Positions 1 through 39,572 of a DNA stretch of 64,000 nt are shown one piece after another (within the stretch, counting starts at the first letter, position 1; each line of letters opens with the position of its first letter). Source of the stretch: Guillardia theta CCMP2712 (taxonomy: Eukaryota; Protista; Cryptophyta). A program made the position numbers and the translations under genes. The DNA lies in NCBI RefSeq assembly GCF_000315625.1, contig NW_005434663.1, positions 1-64,000 of the forward strand, in the 5' to 3' direction. The notes beneath the pieces were generated by a model that worked only from the letters and a program-made list of their open reading frames with translations, was not told where the DNA came from and searched no databases.

Positions 1-955
1 TTTGTGGACTTGCTGGCCTGGCGCCCCAGCGACCAGCATGCGCTGCGCAGCGGCGTGGAGTTGGACCGCTGCAAGGGACTGGCGCAGCAGCTGATAGCGA
101 TAGACGGCAGCTATCTCAGCCGTTGTCATGCCGCCCAAGGTTAGCAGGGGAGTCAGCTCTGCCAAGCTGCCCCCTTTGCCCCAGGGTCCTCTCTTGGCTC
201 GAATCTTGAAAGATCGATCGTGCACGATGCTCACATGTACAGCTGTGAACTTGCGACCATCGATCGCGAAGTCCTCTCTTCCCTGCCAGAGCTTCTCCGC
301 TTGTGCATTGCGGAGGAAGGAAACAGTCACCGGGATCTCTCCAGCACTCGCTATCTCGGGTCTATACGGAGCCTTCCACATGATTGCTTTACTCTCTTGC
401 ACTGAGTCTACGATCAGTCCAATCTCTTCGAATTTCTTCTTCAACTTTTCTTCATGGTTGACATACACCGAGGAGATGCCCAGGAGAGTCATGGAGATGA
501 AGGAAGTTACCTCGTTGCCTGCTGAGGCGGTGTATGTCTCGACCTTCTCCTTCTTGGCTTCCTCAATCTGCTGCATAAACCACTCTCTGGATGCGTCACT
601 CCATCCAGTCATCGCTTCTTGCAGAAGCTCACGTCGTGCCTGCTGACATGTCGAGCGGATGGCTTCTGCGATAGCGTCGGGGGTGCATCCCTCCACAGCC
701 TTGCAAGCCTGGGCTGTCCTGCTGTTCGGATAACGCTTCGCGAAGCTCTTCACCCTCTCGACGAGATCAGCTTCGAGGACAGAGGCATCCACAAGTCCGC
801 TCTGCGTGTATTGGCATGATCTCCGATACAGCAGGTTGCGAACATTTTCATCATACTGAAGAACCATACTTAGAAAGCTATTTGAAGTATACAAACCTCT
901 CGCTTGCAGCTTCCTTGGCGCCCTGGCGGCTTCCCCTACACCTGGCAGGGAGCCA
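1..955 (-). mobile_element. Second-family (B-type) ORF1-like sequence, open off the left edge
   Basis: Shares long nucleotide identities with 12330-13080 (e.g. cgaggagatgcccaggagagtcatggagatgaagga, ctgcgtgtattggcatgatctccgatacagcaggttgcgaac). Protein is homologous to the N-half of element A ORF1. Confidence 0.85.
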
Positions 956-3081
956 TGCACCTCCAGCAGTTGCTTGATTGCTGCTGTCTTGATGCTTTCC
1001 CATTCCGTGTCTTCCACCCTTAGTACCCTGAAATTCTCATGCCATTCCCTTTCCATGATCGATCCTTTCACTCCTGCTATGAATGTTGCTTGTTCAACTT
1101 CATGGTCAGGGAGCAGAGCTGTGATTTCTGCTCTTAGAGCGGCATATTTCTCTTCTTTTTCCTGAAATTTCTTCTTCAGGCATTCCAGGCTTGTTTGTTC
1201 GACTCCGTCATATTCCGATGTCCTTGCGAATTCAATGATGACGATGCGTTTGATGTTTGTAAAGTAGCAGCAACCGTCTGGTATCCATTGTCCTTCTTGG
1301 TGCATGGAAGTCCCCATCGCTTCCATCACGATGCGCATTGGAGTTTCCCACCATGTAGTGACCTGTAGCCTTTGTTTCCTCCAACTCTGCTGCAGTCTTA
1401 CCTTGATCTTCTTCATGACTTGATTGTGTGCTTGTTGGATCATTGCTTGAAACTGCCGACATGCCAGCTGAATATGCCCCCAGGTTTCTTCTCGGTCTGG
1501 ACAGTGGGGGCAGCATGATGAGTTAGTCTTCCCCCATTGAAAGAGCTTCTTCCTCGTCGGTGCTGAGAAGGTTATCGCTTGGATAGCTGTTCGCGTAACT
1601 GAACCCAGGCTTTGTCTTAGCGCTTTGCCTAAGAGATTTCTTCCCACATGCATTTCGAGCATGAACTTCTCTGTCAAGGTGAGGTCTCCCGCTCGAATCC
1701 TTGCCACCATTGTCTGTTGTCTGATAATGTAGTCCCATTTCTTCAAGCGATCGAATCCTGATGTAGGATTTTCTTCTCCTGCAATGATGAATTCCATTGG
1801 GCTATCGTAGATTGCTTTCTCCCATCCCGAGGCAACTGTTTGTTTCCCTTGCTTGGCCAATTCTTTGGCCTCTTGAATGTGTCTCTGAGATTCTTTTGCT
1901 AGTTGGAGTCGGATCCTGATTCCCCTTCCTTCGAGTTTCTTCATGCAAGTGAGTAACCGATCATGTAAGTCCTCCAGCAGTTCGTCTTCGTATCGCATGG
2001 TATCCATTCGCAACGTATTTGTCATAAAGCGGTGGAAACGTGTGGACTGGTACATTATAGTGACTTGATTTCCCCTTTTGATTTGTATTCCTTCCTCAAG
2101 GACATGTTGCAGAAGTAAGCCAATTGCGATTGTGTTCGCTCGGATGATGCTGCACTTCCCATTGATTTTCATCCCTCCTCCTGACGTCATCTCTTTTTGT
2201 TGGAGAACATATCCTATTCGCATGGATCTGTTTTTTCTGCCCTGTGTGATGTCTCCTTCAATAGCTGCTGGGAAATGCCTTCCGCCTTGATGATTGCTGC
2301 GCGGCTGGATCTGATCCCTTCGTCTGTTACACAGCTCCTCATACGTTGGGAGGATGTTGTCCTGAAGCTGGACTCGTAAGTATGTTGGGAGTGTGTGCCT
2401 AACTAGTATCCATAACTCCTCTGCAGTCTTCATCAAACACCTATTCCCTGTTTGCCAGAAGTTTGCTGCATAAGCTATTTGAGCGCCTTTCGGGACCCGG
2501 CTGATAATTTCAAAACCTTCTGGTATCTCATCAATGTAATTCTTCCATCCTATCAGAATGACATGTATTGTATCCAGGATTTGTTCACGAAATCTCTTTT
2601 GTTTGTCCATCCAAACCACCACTCTGTGCAGTTCCCTTGCTCTCTTCTTGTCCAGAGCCTGGGGATGTGTGTGTAGGGTAGGCCAGTTACGAAATGTACT
2701 GATGTCGCATGCTGTAATCTCTGCTAGATGTTGTAAAAACTCGTATGCCAATGGTTGTGTTGTTTCTTGGCGAACCTCTGATACTACCTCCTCGAGTTGT
2801 TGCCACCATGTTGTAGCTTCTGTTTCGCCGTCGTCCAATGCATTAACTATTTCCAGCAGCAGATGTATGCTTTGATTGCAGTCTCTTCGGTTATTACCGT
2901 CCTCTTCCCTTGTTGCAGATGCGAAGGGAGCCGAGTCCAGTGACGCTTCCAACCATTCTATTGGTGGATCCACGGTCTTGCTTTCTTCAATTTGAGATCG
3001 CTCAAAGATGGCTATGTTCCCTTGAACTTTGAAAGGTAATTGCTTGTAGTGTAACAGAATCTTTCTTGCTGATTCCCTCCT
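1..3081 (-). CDS. Element A ORF2 C-terminal fragment (open off the left edge): degenerate RNase H, CCHC knuckle, restriction-like endonuclease, continuing in frame into an ORF1-like sequence
   Basis: Manual translation gives 1027 codons with no stop. It contains CPHCPDREETWGHIQLAC (1459-1512), AHNQV, WIPDGCCYF..RIVIIEFART..EKEEKY..FIAGVKGSI. It is missing from the ORF track because it has no stop in the window. Confidence 0.9.
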
Positions 3082-5630
3082 TCATCATAACAGGTGGGGT
3101 CATGTTGGAGCCACCGCCTCAAAATTACCCGGGTACAAGCCTTCGTATTCGTTTCCTCTCTCCCTTGGTCCGGTCTGGCTAGTTTCTTGTGTGGCTGAAG
3201 TTCATGTGGGCTAGCCTCCCTTTTTCCTTTCCTTCTCTTGTTTAGAGGCTTCCCCTCCTCCCTGGCTGGCCTTCTTCTCTTCCCTGTTCCTGCCTGCTCA
3301 AGTCCGAGTTTTGCCCAGATGACATTCGCTTGCAGATATTGTGCAAGGATTTCTTCTGCTTGTTCCCTTTGCTTTGGGAATGGCCAGAGTCGGATGGGCA
3401 GGTGCAGGGAGATGCCCTCGGTATCTGGGACGGGTAAGACACTTGTCATGGAGTGGAAGCCTACTTGGGGCAGTAGTCTCCATGCCTTTGCAAAACTCTC
3501 CCAGCCTTGCCGAGCAGGAGATGTAGGTAGGGAGTTTTCTCCGGACAGCAGGGAGTTTTCTTCTGAGAGCATCTTGTCCTCCAGGTCATGTAAGATGGCT
3601 ATTGTCCCCGGTTTCATCTTGCTTTCAATCATTTCCCAACTGATGGTGGTCTGCATTTTTTCCGCTATCCAGATTGCGAGTCTCTCCGGTCCTCTTATCT
3701 CTTCGTTCTCTTTGAGTCTGCCCGATCTGATTTCTCGTTGTAGCTGGTTTATTGTTTGACACCCCCATTGGTTGCACCATGATGTTAGTTTGTGGATCAG
3801 ACTGCTTTTGATATCATCATCCACCCTGCATTTCTTATTCGTTTCTTTCTCTAGATACCGAATCGCCGCCCTTCCCAAGATGGGTGCTGGATGGGGGAGT
3901 TGGAGGCCTCCTTTGTCCCAAGGTAGGTGAAAGATAGCGTTGCTTGTACTCTTGCTCAATCCCATAGCTCTTTTGAATGCTCTGGTCCAGAGGGTATCTA
4001 AGGTTTGTAAGTCTGACCAAGACCAGCTCACCAGTACCGCCGAGTATCTAAAGATATTGACGATGCCTACCTTCACCAGGTAATATTTTTGGGCTGCCGA
4101 GTAAGCAGATGATTCAATCAGCTTTGTCAGTTCTTTTGTCTTCTCCAAGATGTGTTCTTTCTCTCCCCACGTGAAGGGGCAGGTGTGCGCCTTGTTGCCT
4201 CTTCCTCCTGGTCTCCACAAGCTGATCCGGATCCCTAGATATTTGAACCATTTTGTCGGTGGTAGGTTCACAAACTCCTTGTCGAAGAACTTGATGGTCT
4301 GTGTTCCTGGGATCTCCCTTCTTAGCCGATAATCAAAGCTGGTGATTTCAGATTTCTTCGTGTTCAGTTCTAATCCACTCCATCGACAGAATCGCTCTAC
4401 CACTTGGACAAGCGTTTTCATCTCTCTCACTGAATGTGCTATCAGGACAAGGTCGTCTGCAAATGACAGATTATTAGGGTGTTGAGTTGCAATCTCGTCT
4501 TGTTGTTGATCAAGTTGTTTGGACAAGATGCTGAGCAGAAGATTTGTTTTTGGCGGACTTGCGGGGCTGCCTTGGGGTAATCCTCTGAGAAGTGGGATGG
4601 CTGCTGTTTCGAACCTCTCTGTCTGAATTTGCAGCGCTATCCCTTGGCTACAACTGATTGCGACGTCTACATCACACTGGTGAAAGCCATATACTTCCAT
4701 GATTTTTGCAATGGATTCGACTGCCACATTGTTAAAGAAGTTTGCAAAGTCGAGGTACAGCAGGATGAGGTCGTGTTGATTACTCTGAGCCTCCTCGATG
4801 ATGTTGAGTAGACGATGACCCTGCCTGATCGTTCCTCCCTCTGGTCTGAAACCTTCCTGGTTGTTAGTGAGTAGCTTATGTTTTTCAGCAGCTTTTGCCA
4901 GTCTGTGCGCTATGACTGCCTGGAAGATCCTCGTTATCGAGGAGAGGACGCATATAGGTCTTTGATTCTCCAAGATGTGACATATCTCATTTTTTGGGAG
5001 GAGCCTAACTCTCGCGAGCATCTTTAGTGTTTGCTTGTCTCCGATCAAGGCTCGGCTGATTGTCTTGCCTATTTCCTCCTTTGCACTGTCAGGCAGAGCT
5101 TTCAGAATCTCGTTTGAAATCAAATCCATGCCTGCTGCTTTCCGGTTGGCCAGTTTTTGAATCCATACTTGGATCTCGCCTGGCTCCAGCGGGTAAGCTA
5201 TCTCTACATCCCTGGTCGGGTGTTGATTGATTTGCTCTGGGGGTTCGAAGTCCGGTGGTTTGACGGAAGTCAGTGATTGACAGCTTTTGCAGAAGAAGAG
5301 GATTGATGCTTCTTCGTTTTTCTGGCTTTTGTCATATAACGGAATCAGTCGTCCTTTTGTTTGACATTCAGCTCTTGCACAGGTTCCGTTCATGGTACAT
5401 CCGTTGACTGCAAAGAAGGTTGCCGTGTGGGTTTCATCTTCTAGATCTCTTGCCAATCTCATGGGGAGGAATTGCTCGATGTTTTTGTATCCTTCCAGGC
5501 GCCACCCTCCTGGCTGTGTGATCAGTCCTCGGATGATGGGTACGATTGCGTGTGCAGGCGCCAGAGTTATGAACAGCTTTTGTGTCAGTGTTGCCTGGTT
5601 CCTCGCCCCGAGAACCTCGACGTGCAGCAT
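3012..5630 (-). CDS. Element A ORF2 fragment: non-LTR reverse transcriptase
   Basis: Motifs KAAGMDLI, RPICVLS, NQEGFRP, LDFANFFNNV, GLPQGSPASP, FADD, GLELNTKKS, FKYLGI, LPWDKGGL. Confidence 0.96.
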   Translation of the reverse strand: MLHVEVLGARNQATLTQKLFITLAPAHAIVPIIRGLITQPGGWRLEGYKNIEQFLPMRLARDLEDETHTATFFAVNGCTMNGTCARAECQTKGRLIPLYDKSQKNEEASILFFCKSCQSLTSVKPPDFEPPEQINQHPTRDVEIAYPLEPGEIQVWIQKLANRKAAGMDLISNEILKALPDSAKEEIGKTISRALIGDKQTLKMLARVRLLPKNEICHILENQRPICVLSSITRIFQAVIAHRLAKAAEKHKLLTNNQEGFRPEGGTIRQGHRLLNIIEEAQSNQHDLILLYLDFANFFNNVAVESIAKIMEVYGFHQCDVDVAISCSQGIALQIQTERFETAAIPLLRGLPQGSPASPPKTNLLLSILSKQLDQQQDEIATQHPNNLSFADDLVLIAHSVREMKTLVQVVERFCRWSGLELNTKKSEITSFDYRLRREIPGTQTIKFFDKEFVNLPPTKWFKYLGIRISLWRPGGRGNKAHTCPFTWGEKEHILEKTKELTKLIESSAYSAAQKYYLVKVGIVNIFRYSAVLVSWSWSDLQTLDTLWTRAFKRAMGLSKSTSNAIFHLPWDKGGLQLPHPAPILGRAAIRYLEKETNKKCRVDDDIKSSLIHKLTSWCNQWGCQTINQLQREIRSGRLKENEEIRGPERLAIWIAEKMQTTISWEMIESKMKPGTIAILHDLEDKMLSEENSLLSGENSLPTSPARQGWESFAKAWRLLPQVGFHSMTSVLPVPDTEGISLHLPIRLWPFPKQREQAEEILAQYLQANVIWAKLGLEQAGTGKRRRPAREEGKPLNKRRKGKREASPHELQPHKKLARPDQGREETNTKACTRVILRRWLQHDPTCYDEGGNQQERFCYTTSNYLSKFKGT

Positions 5631-7728
5631 GGTTTGATGTCTTGCACTCCAAAAGGTTTTGCTTGATTCTTTGGAGTTGTTCTGGAGGAATGTCTCGATT
5701 AACGGGTTCAGTTCTTGAAGATATGCTGTCTCCGGCTGTTGCAGCGCTGGCTGGAGATCTCTCCATGACGTTGTTTGGGTGGCACTTCTCTGGCAGTTGA
5801 CTCAGCATTGGGGCTTTGGGCTTAAAGTCTGACTTCTTGCCCATTGCATTTTGAGACTCTTTACTCCCTATCGTGCCCAAGCGTCTTCTTCGTTCTTCGC
5901 ATGTTTTCAGGAATATCTCTTGGTCTTGTGCTGCGCAGATCTCCTTGAATTTGGTCATATTCTCTCTTATTTCTGCATGTAAGCTCGACTCCTTGTGTGC
6001 GCGATCAATAAAGTCTGGAATTTCTGAAGCGTTTCTTAAGTCCTTGTGAAGTTGCTTGATTTTGCGCTTCAGATCCATCTGAATTTTGGATGCATGTCTT
6101 TTCCCGCTGGAGCCTCGTAGCGGAATTTCCTTGATGGGGAGGGCTGTTGTTATCAATTCGAGAATGTCGCAATCTTGATGTAGAGCTTGTGCCGCTTTTA
6201 TCTTCTCATCAAGTGCTATTGCCCATTCCACGCCTAGTCTTCCCGATAGCTTGTCCATCTCGACCACCCTTTTCTTTCGTCGAGGGGTTGCTTCTCGATC
6301 CCTCCTTTGCGGGAGGATTTCAATCTTTGGGATGGCTTGCTTACCCTCAGCATCGAGAGAGCTCACATTCACTACAAGTGCTCTGTGGTCGACTGCGGCT
6401 CCTATGATGCAATCCTCTGCGGTCTGCGATATTAAGCTTACTGTGCGAGATGGATGGTGTAATGCAAAGACATGATCCAGTTTTGCTTGGTGATGACCCT
6501 GCTTGTACCATGTGGAGAAGGTGAAGTGCGTGCTGCTTCTGCTCATCTTCTCGCAAGTGACCATCTGGGATCGTCCAAGTTCGTTTAAGCCTTGTTCCAT
6601 TCTCTCATCTGCACGGTGCATACTCGATTTGCTCCCGTATCCGACTCTCATGGGGATCTCTGGATGTTGTCGAGATGCATTGAAGTCGCCTCCTATGATG
6701 GTGAGCTTGACACTTGGCTCCGTCTTGAGCATCTGGCTCAGCGTTGCCCACATCTCGTCTTGATCCTCCCCTTGCGCTGCAGTAGGAAAGTGGGTGTTAC
6801 AGATCCCTATCGGTTCTTTTTTTCCGATCTGTAAAAGTTGTATTCTTTTTTGGAGATTCTGCTCTTCCAACATGTCAGCGCGGCGGCAGAGCAGGGGGGA
6901 GGGACGAGGGAGAAGGTCCGCATGTACTAGCGTCACAAGGCGAAGATCACTCTTACCCTTTCTCCCCTCCCCTGCACCTTTCGTCATGAACACTCGGTAG
7001 CATCCCCATTCTTTCTTGATCATCATTCGGAGATCTGCCTCCTTTCGTTTTCCCCCGACCAAAACTTCTTGAAGTAGCACGACTGTTGGTTGATATGTTT
7101 CAATCAGGTATCCTAGGATGTGTTTCAGCACAAATTGACTGCATCCATTGACATTGTGAGAAATGATGTTGCCAGGGGCGTTGTCCTTCCTGTGCGTTTC
7201 CACCCATGCTGATTGCACTGACCTGTCGGTGGTAGTCGTGGGTGGTTTGCTGCCTGCTGGTAGGATTTGCTCCTCCGCCCCCGTTGCCCATTGAAGGTGA
7301 GACGAGTTCCCATCTTGCATCTTTGTTGGGCCTGGTAGCTCCTCCTCTCCCCTTGTCTCCTTGTCGTTCTTCGAGATTGGCGCTGTGTGCATTGCTTGTG
7401 GCGGAGGAGGTGGCTGGAGTGGAGAGACGGGGCATGAAGCAGGAGGTGGGGGAGGGGAGGACGTCAGGATGTCTACCTGTGCTGACCTGTCTTGTAGTTG
7501 CAGGACCGTCGCGGCTATGAGCTTCGTTGATCCTTGTCCTCCTTGCTCCTGCTCGTCTTCCAATCTCTCCTGTAGCCGTGCATCTTCAGATGCCTGGGTC
7601 GCCTGTAGATCGCCTGCGCGTTCTTGGCCGTCTTCTCGCCTTTCCATCCGGTTAGGTATACGTTCCATGGTGAGCTCTGCAGCTTGCCATTCCTTGTAAC
7701 CTGTATCTTGCGCGTGCTGTAGAGCCAT
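5434..7728 (-). CDS. Element A ORF2 fragment: apurinic/apyrimidinic-like endonuclease (APE)
   Basis: Motifs SHNVNG, VLLQEV, ICNTHFP, IGGDFNA, KLDHVF, VDHRAL in canonical order. Confidence 0.92.
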   Translation of the reverse strand: MALQHAQDTGYKEWQAAELTMERIPNRMERREDGQERAGDLQATQASEDARLQERLEDEQEQGGQGSTKLIAATVLQLQDRSAQVDILTSSPPPPPASCPVSPLQPPPPPQAMHTAPISKNDKETRGEEELPGPTKMQDGNSSHLQWATGAEEQILPAGSKPPTTTTDRSVQSAWVETHRKDNAPGNIISHNVNGCSQFVLKHILGYLIETYQPTVVLLQEVLVGGKRKEADLRMMIKKEWGCYRVFMTKGAGEGRKGKSDLRLVTLVHADLLPRPSPLLCRRADMLEEQNLQKRIQLLQIGKKEPIGICNTHFPTAAQGEDQDEMWATLSQMLKTEPSVKLTIIGGDFNASRQHPEIPMRVGYGSKSSMHRADERMEQGLNELGRSQMVTCEKMSRSSTHFTFSTWYKQGHHQAKLDHVFALHHPSRTVSLISQTAEDCIIGAAVDHRALVVNVSSLDAEGKQAIPKIEILPQRRDREATPRRKKRVVEMDKLSGRLGVEWAIALDEKIKAAQALHQDCDILELITTALPIKEIPLRGSSGKRHASKIQMDLKRKIKQLHKDLRNASEIPDFIDRAHKESSLHAEIRENMTKFKEICAAQDQEIFLKTCEERRRRLGTIGSKESQNAMGKKSDFKPKAPMLSQLPEKCHPNNVMERSPASAATAGDSISSRTEPVNRDIPPEQLQRIKQNLLECKTSNHAARRGSRGEEPGNTDTKAVHNSGACTRNRTHHPRTDHTARRVAPGRIQKHRAIPPHEIGKRSRR

Positions 7729-7785
7729 GGTGAGCTCTGCAGCTTGCCATTCCTTGTAACCTGTATCTTGCGCGTGCTGTAGAGC
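7665..7785. repeat. Exact 60-bp tandem duplication in ORF2
   Basis: ccatggtgagctctgcagcttgcc...gctgtagag x2. Confidence 0.95.
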
Positions 7786-7808
7786 TCATCCAGCAGCAGA
7801 TGTCTTGT

Positions 7809-8681
7809 TCATGCGTGTTTTCCTTCGGGGGGGACGCCTTGTTGCCTCCCTGTGTTGAAGATATCTTGTTGTTGTGTTTTCCTTCGTGTCTGCAGCCCAG
7901 TTGACACACATGCCCTCCATGCCGTGTCGTCACAGTGTTCTTGTTGATCGCTAAGCCCAGTTGACACACATGCCCTCCATGCCGTGTCGTCACAGTGTTC
8001 TTGTTGATCGCTAATTGCCTCGGTGATAATCGTCGCCATGAGTATTCGCTGTGCGCCCCCCAATTGAAACTGTGCCTCCCTTTGGCTTCTGACTGTCCCC
8101 AGGTCTCTCTCAAGGGCCGTGCTAAGCGAGTCGACGATGTGTATTCTTTTTGTGTTAACATCTGCCACGATTAGGATCCAATGATTGCCGTTCTCTACGC
8201 AAGGGAATAAGAATGGTTGAGCTGCCCCGGCTAGCAGTCGTTTTGCTCTCCGTGCCCTTCCCTCCTGATCTCTCAAACCCGCTACTATTCTCGGGAGAAC
8301 AATGGTCCCTCTCTGCAGCCCAAATTGGTTTCTAGTTTGCTCGCTGGCATACCTCGTGCCTTGGAGCCATGCTATTTGAAATCTGTCTTCCGCTGGTTCT
8401 AAATTTCGGTTTACCTCAACGATTAATGCCTCCATAACGTCCTCAGAGAGAAATCCATCTTCTCCTGAGTTGAGCAGCGCCGCTGCTCCGTACTCTCTAT
8501 TGTTTTCCCGTAGACTCCAGGGGATCTCCCCTATCAAGTCGAATGTTTGTATTTTTCTGTTTTTTGGATTCTTTTTGTCATTCTTTTTCTCACCTTCTTG
8601 TCTCTTTCTGCTTGATTCCACCACGCCCTGGTGCCCACTGTCCCACCTGCCCTCAACTCCTCCTCCTCCTCCTGCTTCCAT
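7809..8681 (-). CDS. Element A ORF2 N-terminus: Ulp1/SENP (peptidase C48)-like domain
   Basis: FLSEDVME...FLFPCVENGNHWILIVADVNTKRIHIVDSL matches the C48 H-W-x-L-x-V-x-D...(Y/V)DSL signature. The QQ-x-x-x-x-D segment is duplicated. Confidence 0.7.
   Translation of the reverse strand: MEAGGGGGVEGRWDSGHQGVVESSRKRQEGEKKNDKKNPKNRKIQTFDLIGEIPWSLRENNREYGAAALLNSGEDGFLSEDVMEALIVEVNRNLEPAEDRFQIAWLQGTRYASEQTRNQFGLQRGTIVLPRIVAGLRDQEGRARRAKRLLAGAAQPFLFPCVENGNHWILIVADVNTKRIHIVDSLSTALERDLGTVRSQREAQFQLGGAQRILMATIITEAISDQQEHCDDTAWRACVSTGLSDQQEHCDDTAWRACVSTGLQTRRKTQQQDIFNTGRQQGVPPEGKHA
7894..8014. repeat. Exact 60-bp tandem duplication in the protease domain
   Basis: agcccagttgacacacatgccc...gatcgcta x2 (SDQQEHCDDTAWRACVSTGL x2). 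Confidence 0.95.
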
Positions 8682-10828
8682 TAGGCTTGCGCTGCTGGGA
8701 AGGAGTCAAGCGACATCTCTTCCGATTCTGCCGCCATGCTCCCAGCCTCGGGTACATCTTCCATTCGAGCGTCTTTCATCTGTAGCTCACTGCTCAAAAC
8801 AAATTTCAATTCGTTTCTATCTCCCAGCATTCCTACGAGGGAGAGCGCCGTTGCCTCCAGGAATTTATTCAAAGCAATGAAGAGGAGATCAGTTTTCAAT
8901 GGCTTCTCTTCATTTGGTGCGAAAGCGCTGTTCTTGCGTTTCGCTACCTTCCACGTATGTTTGCCTGCAATCACCCTGACTCGTTCACGCAGTCGCTTGC
9001 TCACGGCATTCTCTGCCGCGTTGGCACCCTTATCAGCCCACTCTTGTAGCGTGGGGAAGGATGCATTTCCTGGGCTCTCCGGAGCCATCTCTTGCACCGC
9101 GTCATCAAGATGGAGTTGAAGCTGCCCTTGCTGTTGCAGCTCGCTCCTAGTTACGTCAGCAATTGCTTCCTTAAGTTCTACGACGACCACGTCCGTTCCC
9201 GCATCTGGGAGGTTTATTTCATTGATAATGGAACTGAGCTCGATCTCTTTCCACACAGTTCCTTCTGCTCTGGTCCCCGTCGTTTGTGACCTGGCCTCAG
9301 GGTTAGACTGATCGCGAGTTGCCTGAGGCGACACTTGGAGGTTCAGACTGCTCGCTGTCGTTTGGATTTCAACTGTGCCTTGCCAGCAGAGGAGCTGTGT
9401 GGGGAATTCAGCCATCATCTTTCTTGCACTACTTTCACTGCGTAGCCGGAGAATGATACCAGACCCATCCCAGATCCCTGTTTCTGGATCGCATTGGAGG
9501 TGGATCCGTTGGAGATCTTTTTCCACCTGTGGATCAAAGCAAGCGACAGCCCTCCGAATGTTTCGGATGACTTTTGCTCTGCCCGTTTCATCACTTGCGC
9601 AGATTTTTTCAATCTCATTTCGGGAGAACTTCCCTGACGGCACAGGAGAGGAGATTTGTACCGAGTACAGCATCTCTGCTCCCGTTGCCATTGCCGTGCC
9701 CTCTTGTCGCACCGCATTCTTCATATTCTTGTGCAGCGCCGTTGCTTCCATCTGCACTGAGAACCATTTCAGTATTTTGTCATTCTCTGAGACCAGTCCC
9801 AAAGTGACTCCTGCACGATCCTTTCCATGTCGATCGAATGCTTGAAGAACGATGTCCGCTGCTTCAAGGCTCGAGCACGTTGCGATCCAGTCGACCTCTC
9901 TGTTCTGGTTGACTGTTTCTATTCCTACCGCAGCGAACACCTTCTTTGGCGGTAGGTTCCTCTTGGGGGGGAGGTTCACTGTCATTCCCGCGTTTGGGAT
10001 CAGATCAATGATCGCTAATCCCTGCTTCAGGCATAGCTGCCTGTAGATCTCACATATGTCACCTGTGCTCGAATCGTTGAGCATCAGGAGTTGGGCCACC
10101 TCAGCTAGGATTCCAACTCTGCCCATGTTCTCCTTCTTTGGCCGCATCTTGAACGAGATCGGTGGGTTGGCTGCTGGGTTCACTGCTAGAATCCTCCTGC
10201 CTGCCACCTTGAAGGTACCTTCTCCTTTCCAGAGTTTCTCAGCCGCCTCATTGCGGACAAATGTGATCACTGCTGGGATCTCCGCTGCCTGCACAAGGTC
10301 AGGCTTCAAGGGAGCCTTGAAGATCAGGCTCCTGCTGTCTTGCGTCTGATCGACGATCAAGCCTTGCTCTTCAAGCTTGAGGCATAAGTTTTCCACCTGT
10401 CTGGAAAAGTATGCAGGGATCCCAAGTACCTTCATGGTAATCGTCTGCACACTTGTGCCCTGGTCATCATATGATCTGGCCTCCATCTGCCTTTGTCTGT
10501 CAGCTTGGAACTCTGACAGGTACCACTGCCTGACATCGTCACCCCACTGCCTGAGCCCTTTCGGATTCTCCAGTGACGAGGGTTCAGCAAAGCTGCATGT
10601 CTGACTGATGGCTTCGGCTAAGGCTTCCAAGGATATTTCTTTGGCTTTCAGAGCTTTGCTCGTCCTGCTTTTGGGGTTCTGCCTTGCGAATTCATCCAGT
10701 CTCCGCATCAGTTCGGCTGATGACGGCATCGTGGCAGCTTCCGTCTGCCTCTTGAGGTAGCTGGAGGTACGGTACTGCACGATCTCGTCAGGGTTCACAA
10801 TAGATATTGGCCACATGTTTCGAAGCAT
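8681..10828 (-). CDS. Element A ORF1 (715 aa, putative gag-like/RNA-binding protein, no recognised family)
   Basis: Intact long ORF upstream of ORF2. Homologous to ORF1-like sequences at 1-955 and 11506-13080 (shared GLIVD, KAP..P, FxRN..AEKLWxG, GxFSRxE, LFIALxKF). Confidence 0.85.
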   Translation of the reverse strand: MLRNMWPISIVNPDEIVQYRTSSYLKRQTEAATMPSSAELMRRLDEFARQNPKSRTSKALKAKEISLEALAEAISQTCSFAEPSSLENPKGLRQWGDDVRQWYLSEFQADRQRQMEARSYDDQGTSVQTITMKVLGIPAYFSRQVENLCLKLEEQGLIVDQTQDSRSLIFKAPLKPDLVQAAEIPAVITFVRNEAAEKLWKGEGTFKVAGRRILAVNPAANPPISFKMRPKKENMGRVGILAEVAQLLMLNDSSTGDICEIYRQLCLKQGLAIIDLIPNAGMTVNLPPKRNLPPKKVFAAVGIETVNQNREVDWIATCSSLEAADIVLQAFDRHGKDRAGVTLGLVSENDKILKWFSVQMEATALHKNMKNAVRQEGTAMATGAEMLYSVQISSPVPSGKFSRNEIEKICASDETGRAKVIRNIRRAVACFDPQVEKDLQRIHLQCDPETGIWDGSGIILRLRSESSARKMMAEFPTQLLCWQGTVEIQTTASSLNLQVSPQATRDQSNPEARSQTTGTRAEGTVWKEIELSSIINEINLPDAGTDVVVVELKEAIADVTRSELQQQGQLQLHLDDAVQEMAPESPGNASFPTLQEWADKGANAAENAVSKRLRERVRVIAGKHTWKVAKRKNSAFAPNEEKPLKTDLLFIALNKFLEATALSLVGMLGDRNELKFVLSSELQMKDARMEDVPEAGSMAAESEEMSLDSFPAAQA

Positions 10829-10903
10829 TCTCGATGGTTTCCCGAGCTTCCTGCGTTCCTGGCGACTCTTGCTCTACCACGCAGGGACCCCGCTGATCTG
10901 CAT

Positions 10904-11120
10904 GCCTCAGATAAAGGGATCCTGCATGCCTCAGATAAAGGGATCAGATAAAGGGATCCTGCCTCAGATAAAGGGATCCTGCCTCAGATAAAGGGATCCT
11001 GCCTCAGATAAAGGGATCCTGCCTCAGATAAAGGGATCCTGCCTCAGATAAAGGGATCCTGCCTCAGATAAAGGGATCCTGCCTCAGATAAAGGGATCCT
11101 GCCTCAGATAAAGGGATCCT
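10904..11120. repeat. 20-bp tandem repeat (GCCTCAGATAAAGGGATCCT) x~11 at the 5' end of element A
   Basis: Eight perfect units at 10961-11120 plus about 3 full or partial units. Confidence 0.97.
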
Positions 11121-11165
11121 CTAAACCCTAAACCCTAAACCCTAAACCCTAAACCCTAAACCCTA
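11121..11165. repeat. Telomeric repeat tract (CCCTAAA) x~6
   Basis: Direct reading; plant-type TTTAGGG on the minus strand. Confidence 0.97.
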
Positions 11166-13130
11166 TTATTATTATTATTATGTGAGTTTATTAGAATGCT
11201 GGAATGTTGCTCGGCCTCGTTGTGGGCTTTTGCAATTTGATCCTAGTCTAAAGAGGCGCGCGAGCACTGGGAGTACACGGCCTACAATGCGAACCCTGCT
11301 TCTGAGGCGTCTTTCTACTCTCTACTTCTGCTGTCTTCTCTTGGCTTCCTCAGCCTCAGTCAGGAGAGTTGCCTCCCTCACCTTGGCCTTCGGTCGCCAC
11401 CTACTCCTCCTCCATTCAGCTTCCTCAGCCTCAGTCAGGAGAGTTGCCTCTCCTCACCTTGGCCTTCGGTCGCCTCCTACCTTCTCTCCTTACCTTGAGC
11501 TCAGCTCAAGCTCGGTACGGGCTCGCCCCGTCTTCTTCCTCGCCCTCGCCTTGCTCTTCCTCCATGTCTTCCTCTTCTTCGTCATCTTCCCTCATCTCCA
11601 CCCGCAGTCGGTCCTTCTTGTCCACCTTCAGCGAGCAGGCCAACACATGCATCTCTGCGAATTTACTCAGTGCTATGAACAGGAAGCTAAGAGATCGACG
11701 CTCTATGTCGTCGCTCTCCGCCTCCTGCTCAAGCTCAGCAGCTGCCGTTGCCCGTGGCGAGAACGCGCTGCCCCTCCTTGCCTTCTTGCTCTCTCCTTGC
11801 ACGCGAGTCCAGCGCTTGCTCTGCAGCCACTTATCTTCTTGAACCTCAATGCTGGCAAGCTTCAGGTTCATTATTCTTGCTAATTCCAACATGGCTCGCT
11901 TGACTCGCGTGGTCGATGTGTTACCTCCTCCGCACAGTGCTTCCATCTCCTTCCTCGAGAAGCGGCCTGTGCTCATGCTTGACTTCGACTTGATCTGCAC
12001 CCTGAAACTGCCGCTTGGAGCCTGCTCCCTGTCGCGAAGTACCTTCCTCTGCTTGGCAATCTTTCCTCTCGGCACGAAGGTGTCTGCTGTGAGCTCGACT
12101 GCAAACGTCTCTCTGAGCTTGGCGTCGTCGCTGACGAGAGTCAGGTGCACCCCCTCCATCGCCTCGCTCTCTCGCAGCGGCGCTGGCCGTCGATGGGCAG
12201 GATAGTACCCACTCGAGCTCTCTCTGCTGTTGAGCTCCGGTGCTTGCTCCAACAGCAACATACGTCTTCGGGCTCGGCCCCTTGCGACCTCTCTGCCCAG
12301 CACCCTGCACGAGCATGCCCGCCAGCGGTTGTACCTCTGCTGCGGCGAGACATTGCGAGATCAGTTGGAATTGATAGATCCGAGCTATGTCCGCCGTCGA
12401 CATTCCTCCAAGAGCTAGGAGCTGCGATAGCTCGGCAAGGCTCCCTCCCTTGCCCCAAGGTCCTCGCTTGGCTCGGAGCTTGAACGACCGGTCGTGTGCA
12501 ATGCTGACTTCAGTTGCTCTGAAAATTCGCCCGTCGATGCTGTACTCTCTGCTGCCTTGCCAGAGTGCGATGGCTTCTTCCGATTCCGAAGGAAGGAGAT
12601 GGTGACTGAGACGGCGTCTGCTCGTGCTATCTCAGGTCTGTAAGGTGCTTTCCACATGATGGACTTGTCGTCTCTATCGACTGAGTCTACTATGAGTCCC
12701 AGCTCCGTCAACTTCATTTTCAATTTGTCTTCTTGTCGCACATACATCGAGGAGATGCCCAGGAGAGTCATGGAGATGAAGGAGGTCTCCTCGGTGTCTT
12801 CGGTGCCGATGCCAGTAAGTCTCGACATTCTGCTGTTTGGCCTCTTTCATCTGTTGCATGAACCATGCTTTCGACCTCTCTCGACGAGGTCGGCCTCCTC
12901 GACGTGGCCTCCTGAGCGCTCACCCTGCGTGTATTGGCATGATCTCCGATACAGCAGGTTGCGAACGCTCTCATCATACTGTAGTACCATACTTAGAAAG
13001 CTGTTTGAACTGCACAAACCTCTTGCTCGCAGCTTCCTCCGGTGCCCAAGTTGCGCTCTCCCTACTACGCGCCACAGAGCAGCATGCCTCTGTCAACGGG
13101 CCCGGTTCCTAATGTCAACGGGCCCGGTTC
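11166..13130 (-). mobile_element. Element B: ~2-kb ORF1-only non-autonomous retroelement with AATAAA + (TAA)n tail; ORF frameshifted and internally deleted
   Basis: ORF pieces 12415-12828, 11921-12403 and 11506-12303 are homologous to element A ORF1. No RT. AATAAA at 11187-11192 (minus), (TAA)5 at 11166-11180, telomeric repeats on both sides. Confidence 0.85.
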
Positions 13131-13153
13131 CTAAACCCTAAACCCTAAACCCT
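13130..13153. repeat. Telomeric repeat tract (CCCTAAA) x~3
   Basis: Direct reading. Confidence 0.95.
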
Positions 13154-13229
13154 GACAAGGCCCGGCCTGCCTCTGACAAGGCCCGGCTGCCTCTGACAAG
13201 GCCCGGCCTGCCTCTGACAAGGCCCGGCC
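13153..13229. repeat. ~21-bp tandem repeat (GCCTCTGACAAGGCCCGGCCT) x~4
   Basis: Direct reading; resembles the element B 5' terminus gcctctgtcaacgggcccgg. Confidence 0.9.
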
Positions 13230-13261
13230 CTTAACCCTAAACCCTAAACCCTAAACCCTAA
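13228..13261. repeat. Telomeric repeat tract (CCCTAAA) x~5
   Basis: Direct reading. Confidence 0.95.
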
Positions 13262-13445
13262 GGATACCGCTTCGCGAAGCTCTTCACCCTCTCGACGAGA
13301 TCGGCGGCTCCGAGGCTCGACGTGGCCTCCAGAGCGCTCGCGGCCCTGCGTGTATTGGCATGATCTCCGATATTAGAAGCTGTTTCAACTATACCAAGAA
13401 CTTGCTCGCAGCTTCCTCCGTCCCCTTGCGCTCTCCCTACCGGCT
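13262..13445 (-). mobile_element. Element C: 5' fragment of a B-type element, truncated within ORF1
   Basis: cgcttcgcgaagctcttcaccctctcgacgagatc and ctgcgtgtattggcatgatctccgata are shared with 734-830. Confidence 0.85.
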
Positions 13446-23548: not shown

Positions 23549-23752
<204 letters not shown>

Positions 23753-36000: not shown

Positions 36001-39000
36001 CATCCTCATGCCACTTGAGGCTCTTGCCCGAGTACATGATGAACTTCTTCACTGAGGACCTCTGGAGTCCCGTAAACTCGCGGACCCACTCGAACGGACA
36101 AGAGAACTCCTGTCCCTCGCTGACAAGCTTGATGTCGCCTTCGCTCTTCTTCAAAGTGGCCTTGATGTAGTTTTGTTTGCAACTGTCAAATAACAGTGAG
36201 CAACAACATTCCACGTTTTTCGACAAACCGAATCTCAAAAGGATGACCGTCCTTGGCGCTGACTTGGCACATCAGGTCAAGAATCTGCTGACTGGTTTCT
36301 GTCGCATCCCCTTCCTCCTTTTTGTCTGAATCTGAGAAGAATTCAGCACAAGAAGAACCAGCAGCCTACAACCTTTACGATCAGCCTTCTTCTGCTTTAG
36401 AGCCGCATCTTCAGCTCTCTTCTTCTCTACTATCTTTTCAATCTGATTTCTCGTTAATTTCCCCCTCATCCAAACAAAAACCTTCACCTGTCGCAGCTGT
36501 TGGTTCATGATTTGGCGAACTTTATCGCTCGAACAAGCCTCGTCGGTGAGAAACTGAATCATTTGAATCTTCAGCTCAACCGAAAGATCCTTTGGCTCTG
36601 TTGTTCCCAACGCTTTGTACAGTTTCTCGTACATGTCGAAGAAACTGTGGCGCTTGATCAATAGGCGGACCATTTCGGGCCAACATGCTTCGTTCAAGAG
36701 TTGCCAGACGTTGTACTTGACCTCACATTCAGCCAGTTCGGAGCTTAACAGGGGACCATGGGCCAACTGGATGTCAACAACATCAGACTCCACCGCATCC
36801 TCAAGCACTTCGTCGTCGTCACGAATCCATTGACACCTTGCCGCAAGACCTGACAACCATCTTGCAAGTTCGTAGAACCTCTCGACGTTGTCTCGAGCTC
36901 TCCTGTCTTCAGCTCCTCCAGACTCCACAATGCAGGACAGAAGGTCATCGTACGACATCTTTGAAGCTCCGAGAGGAGCAGCGAGGTCGTGAATGAATTG
37001 GTAGATGCAAAAGAAGTCTTCCTCCCATCCCGCGATCGGTAAAATATCAGCAGAACCTGCTGGCTTCTTCACTGAGCTCGCAACCTGGCCCTTATCTGGC
37101 CCGATGCTGATGAGATGTAGCGATTCATCTAGCTTCTTTGATTCATCATGTTTCATGGAAAGAATTTCTTTCTTTTGCTTCTGTTCATCCTTGACCTTCT
37201 GGCGAAGAGATTTCATTTTCTCCTTCTCGAGTTTGAATGCCATCTTCCCCTGAAGCTGTATCTTACGCTTCTCTTTCTTCTCTTTCTTCATCTCCACCTT
37301 CTGCTTTCGTTTATCGTATTTCTCGCGAACTGTTTCTGGCACTTCCTCGTCATACAGCTTGATGGCTTCGATCACGTCAGGCTCTTCCAGATCTTCACTT
37401 CCCATAGCATCGTCATCATACCTCAATCGCCAGATCGAAGAAGGTTCCCCGGTAACTTCAGAGGTGTAATCTGATTCTTCCGCAGGCAGCCATCCTATCA
37501 CTACTCCATCTGCTGCATCAACGATCCGACTCTTTCTGTCATAAATGAATCTTCGGAAGGGTTTTCCAACGTGCTGGTTGTCAGTACGCCATTCGCTCAG
37601 ATCATTTTCATTCGCTTGCTCTTTATCGTTGGCAGCACTTTGAGCTTTCTGTGCCTCCTCAACCTTCTTCATCACAGCCTTGGAACCAAGCTTCTTCTTG
37701 TTGATCCTAAATGCTTGTTTCTCGTATTTCTGTCGTTCAGATTGAGGCAATTCTGCATATTTCTGCTTCAGAATTTTGCGTAGAAGTGTCGGTTTCTCTG
37801 CTGAATCTGGATGCTCGGACTTGACGGCTGCTCGGCGTTTTTTTGCAAAGAGGCTGTATCCCGAAGTCATCAGCTTCTTCAAAGCTGGGTCAGTTGTAGG
37901 AAGCTCAAATTTCTCCTGCTTCTTTCCTTTCGATTTCTTGGCCGAGTTCGTTGCCTTCGCTGGAGACTCAGTGGAAGAAGGCTTCTTCTTCGGCGGTTCT
38001 TCTCCTGTAAATTTGTATTTGGAGCATTCAAGAACATCCGGGAGGCCCTCCAATATCCTTCTCACTTCCTTTAAAGCCAAACCAAATCGAAGTCCCAAAC
38101 TCTTCGTGTCCCACTTATTGACATGCAGCTTCTCTTCCTGGGTTCCGTTTTCAACTAAATGATTCTTGACTTGCTTCCAGGCATCTTGCGGTGATTTCCC
38201 TTTGAATGAGAGGTTTCTTTTGGGTACCTGTACCTGTTTTGAAGGGTAACGGTCAAAATTACCGAGGAATGACGAAATAAAATCACCTCAAACAAAGGAA
38301 TAAGGATACCATCTGAATTTTTTTCAGCACTAACACAATTTTGGAAGTGCAAATCAAGCTCCTCATCCAAATATTCCGATTGGAATCCCGTGGGATACAA
38401 GATATTGCTGTCATGAAATAATGGGGAAATTTTGTCGTCAATAATGGTTCCCAATGCCTGCACTGTCAAATTTCCAGACTTGGTAATGAATGGCACCTGT
38501 GGCATATCAGCAAACCATCTCAGTCACGTTGGTACATTACTGGGATCTTGCTTTGGAACAGCTCCGCCTCTCGGAAGAGCTCAATTCTTGACTTTTTGCT
38601 CTCGTTACCTTCCGAAACCGACTCAATGGCGTCCCTTCTCTTCGTGAATTCCTGCTGAGTCGGAGATATGTACGAGAATGTCTCGGTGATTGACCCGTCC
38701 TCCGCGGTAACCTCCTGCGACCGCACTGTCCATCCGTCTTCTATCACGTCCGGTCCCCCGCGTTTCTTGACTTCCCTTTGGAACTCCCTTAGCACACTTT
38801 GAGAGGTCCTCTTCCTCGGAGCTGATTTCGGGCCCGATTGACTCGTGTCCAGCGCCTCAGGAGCTGGTGGGGGATCGTTCACAGGCGCCGTATCGTTGGC
38901 TTGTTTAGGCTTCAACGGTGGAAGCTCCAGGTACTTCATTACTTCCTTTTTCGTGGGAAATTCCTGCTGAGTCGGAGATATGTACGAGAATGTCTCGGTG

Positions 39001-39572
39001 ATTGACCCGTCCTCCGCGGTAACCTCCTGCGACCGCACTGTCCATCCGTCTTCTATCACGTCCGGTCCCCCGCGTTTCTTGACTTCCCTTTGGAACTCCC
39101 TTAGCACACTTTGAGAGGTCCTCTTCCTCGGAGCTGATTTCGGGCCCGATTGACTCGTGTCCAGCGCCTCAGGAGCTGGTGGGGGATCGTTCACAGGCGC
39201 CGTATCGTTGGCTTGTTTAGGCTTCAACGGTGGAAGCTCCAGGTACTTCATTACTTCCTTTTTCGTGGGAAATTCCTGCTGAGTCGGAGATATGTACGAG
39301 AATGTCTCGGTGATTGACCCGTCCTCCGCGGTAACCTCCTGCGACCGCACTGTCCATCCGTCTTCTATCACGTCCGGTCCCCCGCGTTTCTTAACTTCTC
39401 TTTGGAACTCTTTCAAGACACTTTGAGAGGTTTTCTTTCTGGGTGCTGGTTTAGATTTCAAGTCATCTTGCATTACGTCACTTTGGGATTTTGCTTTTAC
39501 AGGCTTCTGCATTGATGGCGGAACATTTTCAGCTGAGACAAAGTCCTTGATGGAGTTTATCCTCCCTTTCAC
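33007..39572 (-). CDS. Large BAZ/MBD9-like chromatin regulator: MBD-like x3, FYRN/FYRC, HMG box, Tudor-like repeats, DDT, WHIM1, PHD (multi-exon; 5' end may extend to ~40130)
   Basis: GW...YISP...F.TKKEV.KYL; LTVQALGTI...LYPTGF; FGL...RRILEGLP...CSKYKF; SGYSLFAKKRR...ERQKYE; IYQFIHDLA; LSVELKIQMIQFL; CLICFEGGNLICCDSCPRTVHAACLGL..PKGDFYCFDC. Confidence 0.8.
38647..39430. repeat. 312-bp coding tandem repeat x~2.5 (104 aa, MBD-like unit)
   Basis: Identical ttcctgctgagtcggagatatg at 38649, 38961 and 39273. Confidence 0.95.

Follow-up and report, generated by a model that had tools for sequence, protein, structure and literature searches.

Introduction

Retrotransposons that are specific for telomeres and are accompanied by partners without a reverse transcriptase (RT) are, to our knowledge, known mainly from insects and from one fungus. 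At Drosophila telomeres the abundant HeT-A elements encode a gag/ORF1 protein and no RT, and are thought to use the RT of the co-resident TART and TAHRE elements. HeT-A joins the chromosome end by oligo(A), with its tail towards the centromere, in a genome that has no telomerase repeats. For SART1 and TRAS1, two R1-clade elements of Bombyx mori, the RT is believed to recognise the 3' UTR, and we know of no ORF1-only partners of SART or TRAS. The sense strand of SART1 lies on the G-rich strand, and its poly(A) joins the AGG of TTAGG (PMC7265360). In Magnaporthe oryzae, MoTeR1 and MoTeR2 combine a telomere-repeat-targeted RT element with an RT-less partner, the two sharing their ends (Starnes et al., 2012, cited in PMC4640811).

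Here we describe a stretch of 64,000 nucleotides (the window) from the cryptophyte alga Guillardia theta CCMP2712, in which elements comparable to each of these systems are found. As in SART1 and TRAS1, they occupy one fixed position of the telomerase repeat and form head-to-tail arrays interleaved with repeat tracts; orientation and type of junction are those of SART1. Apart from the host, the system differs from SART1/TRAS1 in its 7-mer repeat, in (TAA)n or (CTA)n tails that replace poly(A), in an autonomous partner with a Ulp1-like protease and a C-terminal zinc-knuckle/PD...E region, and in the fact that most of the sampled copies are ORF1-only partners, a ratio that is biased because the loci were collected through ORF1 proteins. 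These partners, families F and G, are like HeT-A in being ORF1-only and without RT, but their orientation is the reverse and telomerase repeats surround every copy. Their ORF1 is unrelated to HeT-A Gag, having no Pfam match and appearing RRM-like rather than of the zinc-knuckle type. The combination of a telomere-repeat-targeted RT element with an RT-less partner is that of MoTeR1/2; the MoTeR RT, however, is CRE-like and comes with a restriction-like endonuclease, and MoTeR2 has an ORF without a relative among the MoTeR1 genes, whereas F and G carry a paralogue of ORF1 of the autonomous element. Mammalian HAL1 (half-L1) is also a LINE derivative with ORF1 and without ORF2, but it derives from L1 and is dispersed, whereas F and G are old and site-specific lineages. 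Full-text literature searches turned up neither telomeric retrotransposons in Guillardia nor a telomere-specific Dualen element.

An initial annotation had presented one 2-kb unit of the window, here called B, as a HeT-A/HAL1-like non-autonomous family mobilised in trans. The main result for B is a correction. Families that fit this reading do exist at G. theta telomeres, namely F and G, but B is not one of them. In all likelihood it is a non-functional, one-off chimera of ORF1-only, telomere-repeat-specific non-LTR retrotransposons, whose parents F and G are the non-autonomous partners. As a dead chimera it should neither be counted as a family nor be annotated as a gene.

Results and discussion

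Unit B is bounded by telomeric tracts

B lies at a chromosome end of G. theta and reads on the minus strand (as do all its parts) from 13129 to 11166, between two telomere tracts. The upstream tract, GGG(TTTAGGG)2TTTAGG (13130-13152), ends in TTTAGG and forms the 5' junction. It is followed by a G2-type tandem repeat with two units of 22 bp (AACCGGGCCCGTTGAC..., 13086-13129), the last of which ends in GAGGC and precedes ATGC; this G2-type repeat is present nine times at locus L001 (12584-12770). The body of B (11833-13085) belongs to the G2 subfamily and comprises a 5' UTR, the start codon (ATG, 12990) and the codons of ORF1 as far as number ~445. At 11832-11833 this body passes bluntly and in frame (...CAAGAAGAT/AAGTGGCTG...) into the last 108 codons of family F with their stop (11506-11832, the stop being at 11508-11506), where the amino acid identity to the proteins P0015, P0017 and P0018 is 99-100%.

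The 3' UTR, also of family F, measures 325 nt (11181-11505). It contains two 76-bp units, box 1 (TTAGAC, 11252-11247) and a terminal box (TCTAATAAACTCA, 11195-11183) followed by CA. The duplicated segments (11480-11419 and 11404-11344) are 96.8% identical at a period of 76, and family F copies have two to three of these units. The minus strand then continues through ...AATAAACTCACA (at greater length ...CATTCTAATAAACTCACA) into the (TAA)5 tail (11166-11180), and from there into TAGGG(TTTAGGG)5TTTAG (11121-11165) and the 5' repeats (20 bp) of the element that follows. This downstream tract is the 3' junction of B and at the same time the 5' junction of element A. A telomeric 21-mer occurred eight times in the window and not once in 100 shuffles. 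The junction, the tail, the 3' UTR and its duplication are real, as established by reading of the sequence together with repeat and shuffle analysis. The initial annotation had described all four correctly, including the direct joining of (TAA)5 to TAGGG(TTTAGGG)n and a separate 3' UTR of about 320 bp. No ORF2, RT or endonuclease (EN) was found between the two telomere tracts bounding B.

Unit B joins parts of two families

The ORF of B had been described as homologous to both ends of ORF1 of element A, with the middle and all of ORF2 missing. The losses stand: ORF2, RT and EN are missing and about 165 codons are gone. A single ORF is not present, however, and B is not a shortened copy of A ORF1: its relatives are the ORF1-only families G2 and F, and the ORF1 of these has no more than 31-32% identity to that of A. 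In tblastn and blastx comparisons the homologous coding sequence was distributed over five frame segments, the longest ORF being 265 aa. The frame is broken by four indels, a deletion of ~160 nt at ~12877, +4 at 12815, +2 at 12582 and -17 at ~12180, which are private to B in comparison with its closest relatives (L009, L005 and the G copies of L006 and L008) and do not occur at L009, L005 and L008. Assembly errors were considered for these indels and rejected, none of the four (+4, +2, -17, ~-160 nt) being in a homopolymer. The protein P0014 was rejected as a reference copy of B, as it is a different, A/G gene-model fusion.

Between 12875 and 11833 B is 96-98.7% identical to the G2 copies of L009 and L005 (98.7% to L009 10397-11445 outside the indels). 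The identity of its G2 body to G copies is 86%, and blastx gave 84-87% with G-type proteins. From 11832 to the tail, the last 667 nt, the nucleotide identity to at least 14 family F copies is 96-99.6%. Every alignment of B stops at 11833/11832, and the joint skips the ~165 codons, which include half of the RRM-like domain.

B might be regarded as a distinct short ORF1-only family that lacks the middle of ORF1 and is itself mobilised in trans. Its termini are complete, with 5' repeats straight after TTTAGG and the tail in the standard register, so that B could have inserted as a unit. We nevertheless consider such a family highly improbable, because the joint is crossed by no other copy among the ~30 sampled at 11 loci, because each half of B is 98-99% identical to a different full-length family, and because the ORF carries four private frame-breaking indels. 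A run search with the 62-nt G2/F joint, a weak test in which two words were sampled, also listed no sequencing run. Two parent families at 1-2% divergence, the unique joint and the frame breaks indicate that B is, as judged from its sequence, a G2/F chimera that is young but no longer functional. With this joint and these indels it is a single-copy deletion derivative, the very case that the initial annotation had named as contrary to its own reading. The G2/F joint of this chimera may have arisen in one of two ways. The RT could have started on F RNA and switched template to G2 RNA, or a non-homologous deletion could have fused a G2 copy to an adjoining F copy in the array.

Families F and G encode a conserved ORF1

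Both parent families include intact copies, F being 2.65 kb long with an ORF of 715 aa and G 2.85 kb with an ORF of 716 aa. A complete F at L001 4527-7197 consists of a telomere tract, a 5' UTR, the intact 715-aa ORF and a 3' UTR with three 76-bp units, which ends in ...AATAAACTCACA(TAA)4 followed by TAGGG. In F and G a single ORF lies between the 5' repeats and the tail, which is the structure of an ORF1-only LINE partner, and B holds only broken remnants of it. No Pfam match to an EN or RT was found in either family. The G. theta gene models that belong to the ORF1 family number 36.

The initial annotation had proposed a search for intact ORFs and for a dN/dS below 1, and both were found. 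Intact ORFs (708-716 aa) were present in four F and three G copies of the sampled loci, and the Nei-Gojobori dN/dS was 0.25 for F versus G (dS ~1.2), 0.18-0.19 for G versus G and 0.07-0.21 within F. These ratios indicate that ORF1 is under purifying selection, which applies to the families F and G and not to B. With respect to ORF1 of A, dS was saturated. This saturation and the low protein identity mentioned above imply that F and G are old lineages and not recent deletion products of A.

The ORF1 protein had no match in Pfam and, in a profile search, none in the PDB. Residues 381-488 of a structure model (pLDDT 61.5) could be aligned to RRM domains over 73-81 residues (Z 7.3-8.7, rmsd 2.1-3.0), which is suggestive only of an RRM-like domain in the ORF1 of F and G. 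Among public sequencing runs, one yielded a Logan contig with an intact F-like copy of 713 aa. A database fragment of 461 aa filed under Heterocapsa arctica is 100% identical to F ORF1; this entry is probably a cross-contamination. Homologues of ORF1 and ORF2 also occur in Hanusia phi, in database entries believed to be transcriptome-derived. Expression of the families may be read only from entries of this kind and from runs guessed to be RNA. At L003 11099-11140 six telomere units lie inside an F ORF1 in place of ~51 nt of coding sequence; the gene model P0020 seems to skip these units by splicing.

3' ends join the telomeric repeat in a fixed register

The complete 3' ends that were collected amounted to 21 (12 F, 3 G, 5 A and 1 A2), and each of them joins telomeric repeats. 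In 18 of the 21 the register is ...TA/GGG followed by full units; two are one base off and one has another register. If seven registers are taken to be equally likely, the occurrence of 18 of 21 in a single one has p ~5e-13, a value to be read with the reservation that the copies may not all be independent. The fixed register near the T/AGGG boundary and the SART-like orientation, both put forward in the initial annotation, were thus borne out, the sense strand being the G-rich strand as in SART1. The collected copies share with SART/TRAS-type elements a fixed position and orientation in the telomerase repeat. They do not share the poly(A), their tails being (TAA)n or (CTA)n, and probably not the RT/APE of the R1 clade, the ORF2 of the RT-encoding partner having extra C48 and C-terminal knuckle regions.

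All nine reference loci are situated at most 35 kb from a scaffold end, which five of them reach, and in eight of the nine the sense strand points outward. This terminal location could be explained by priming at the chromosome end in the manner of HeT-A/TART instead of by an endonuclease nick inside the repeat tract, and many 3'-truncated copies followed by new telomere repeats, suggesting erosion and healing, would agree with this. The orientation, however, is opposite to that expected: with the sense sequence on the G-rich strand, the 3' tails face outward. Moreover, telomerase repeats are found on both flanks in a fixed register, as for SART1, and element A encodes an APE-type endonuclease. 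End-priming is for these reasons hardly credible. Integration inside the repeat tract is SART-like, and the ORF1-only content of F and G is HeT-A-like.

The 5' junctions are located at TTTAG(G), after which come family-specific repeats of 19-22 bp, many with AGG at their start. Such AGG-starting units could pair with the TTTAGG-3' end in second-strand priming. The units are AGGATCCCTTTATCTGAGGC in A, GCGCCGGTTATTTCAGGCA in F, AGGCCGCCCCTTCCCGAGGC in G and ACCGGGCCCCTGACAGAGGC in G2 (examples at L001 12584-12770, L003 9643-9900 and window 10898-11120), and their copy number ranges from 1 to 13 or more. MoTeR 5' ends are likewise reported to have variable short tandem repeats.

RT-encoding elements A and A2, probable partners of F and G

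Element A (958-11120, minus strand) is autonomous and has nine 20-bp 5' repeats, an ORF1 of 715 aa and an ORF2 with Ulp1-like, APE and RT domains. Its ORF1 (10828-8681) is 91-96% identical to G. theta CCMP2712 proteins. In the window A falls short of its stop codon by ~50 nt, and the 5' UTR of an F copy follows in a blunt joint (940-975, minus strand) from which tail, telomere tract and 5' repeats are all missing. The frame of ORF2 consequently runs on into F. The true 3' end of A was found at L001 14694-14159; it includes a separate 3' UTR of ~400 nt and ends in GAGTCTAATAAACTCAAA(TAA)n. A second RT lineage, A2 (L008 12770-17020), is 64-65% identical to A in nucleotide sequence and 5'-truncated inside the RT. 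A search for a full-length A2 gave only a Hanusia phi transcript protein. An independent metagenome contig carries an intact A-like element whose ORF1 has 719 aa and whose ORF2 (2575 aa) includes C48, APE and RT; an F-like copy comes next to it.

The ORF2 domains of the partner scored E 1e-28 for RT, 4e-8 for C48 and 9e-5 to 3e-3 for APE, the last being below Pfam's cut-off. In the C-terminal region, a CCHC knuckle and a PD...E motif have been conserved across A, A2 and L011. Dualen/RandI elements have APE and RT plus a C-terminal restriction-like endonuclease, and with its C48, APE and RT followed by the knuckle and the motif A looks Dualen-like; all of these domains are absent from B, F and G. 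LINE/Dualen elements have been reported in cryptophytes by RepeatMasker-type surveys (PMC12747079). The C-terminal region of A had no sequence match in the PDB, and its structure model (pLDDT 46) was too poor for a search for a restriction-like endonuclease. At L001 14654-19273 (minus strand) the RT of an A copy is interrupted by an in-frame fragment of an LTR retrotransposon with an integrase core, a Tf2 SH3 and a chromodomain. A divergent A-like copy, A' (L003 7258-9643), is 84% identical to A in nucleotide sequence and has an intact 715-aa ORF1 and 19-bp 5' repeats of its own; it breaks off ~80 nt inside ORF2, where 13 F-type 5' repeats follow immediately.

A comparison of the 3' ends showed that F and G share with A and A2 only a short 3' motif and the type of tail. 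A2 ends in ...CATTTAGACTAG...CTAGCATTCTAATAAAATCGA(CTA)5, G in ...CTAGCATTCTAATAAACTCAA(CTA)n and F in ...CTAGCATTCTAATAAACTCACA(TAA)n, so that (TAA)n is found in A and F and (CTA)n in A2 and G. The box CTAGCATTCTAATAAA is common to A2 and G, and all four have in common only two short boxes, TTAGAC and TCTAATAAA(C/A)TC. These two boxes can pair. With fold z values of -3.3 (A), -1.7 (G) and +0.5 (B/F), a 3' stem shared by A, A2, F and G is weakly supported. A search for the 3' box in metagenomes gave only chance matches among the first 120 stretches listed. A (TAA)n 3' end is also known from the Drosophila I factor, which differs in being autonomous and not telomere-specific; there it reportedly results from repeated copying of the terminal triplet by the RT.

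The pairing of A with F and of A2 with G by tail type follows a LINE/partner pattern, which suggests mobilisation in trans. F and G are probably mobilised by the RT of A/A2-type elements, as far as can be deduced from sequence. The ORF2 protein of the 10.4-kb elements A and A2 would recognise the shared 3' end, i.e. TTAGAC ... TCTAATAAA(C/A)TC plus a trinucleotide tail, and would place a nick near 5'-CCCTA^AA in the C-rich strand. The ...TA-3' set free in this way could then pair with UA of the tail and prime reverse transcription. Finally, the 5' end would be joined after TTTAG(G), aided by the AGG that starts many (not all) 5' repeat units. The shared boxes and the different tails offer a tractable pair of 3' ends for the study of template choice by LINE RTs.

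Rearrangements in the subtelomeric array

On its minus strand the window contains, in this order, unique DNA, 19-bp repeats, a G-type stub, a telomere tract, a 21-bp-repeat stub, a telomere tract, B, a telomere tract, A and F. The two stubs with telomere repeats occupy 13153-13444 (minus strand), comprising a G-type 5' fragment (13444-13263), a tract (13262-13228) and 3.8 copies of a 21-bp 5' repeat (13227-13153). F is represented by the 5' part of a copy (1-957, minus strand) that is 98% identical to the intact L001 4541-5494 and ends at the window start.

B is not the only chimera in the sampled loci. At L001 7264-9843 A(1-1793) is joined to G(2031-2847), at L004 15942-16757 a G2-type 5' repeat to F(1852-2652), and from L005 5831 onward A'-type repeats to F(1313-2652). 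In addition, many copies are 3'-truncated, some being followed by new telomere repeats and others fused directly to the 5' end of the next element without a telomere tract. These numerous blunt rearrangements and truncated copies imply that recombination also shapes the arrays and could spread copies without retrotransposition. The yeast Y' elements are a model of such subtelomeric spread. The ORF1-only units might accordingly owe their spread mainly to subtelomeric recombination, gene conversion or segmental duplication and not to retrotransposition in trans. This is unlikely in view of four observations. First, the register stays fixed although copies differ in the length of the tail (3 to 13 units) and in how many telomere units separate them from one another. 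Second, 5'-truncated copies keep intact tails, the shortest consisting of 27 nt of A and (TAA)13. Third, the same junction is found in a divergent (85%) lineage from a metagenome. Fourth, ORF1 is under purifying selection.

The cryptophyte system would add an independent case of selfish elements settling in telomeres beside an active telomerase. In it, site-specific insertion of the SART kind goes together with ORF1-only partners of the HeT-A kind, which selection has long preserved. A more far-reaching proposal, which we put forward only tentatively and hold to be rather doubtful, is that a stable system of three parties maintains the ends of G. theta chromosomes. Two autonomous LINE lineages, both accompanied by a long-lived ORF1-only partner (A by F, A2 by G), would invade the telomerase repeats again and again at a single register, and erosion, healing by telomerase and re-insertion would build the subtelomere, chimeras like B recording frequent switches of the RT between partner RNA templates. 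If true, this would be an independent protist counterpart of the silkworm and fruit-fly telomere elements in one genome.

Stubs of ~20-bp 5' repeat units alone, followed by new telomere repeats, were observed in the window (13153-13227, 3.8 units) and at L004 15902-15920 (1 unit). Truncation just after the 5' repeats with subsequent telomere healing seems to be frequent. The non-telomeric part of the window contains a 312-bp tandem repeat (2.6 copies, 97% identical, 38647-39452) and a (TGCC)50 array (23549-23752).
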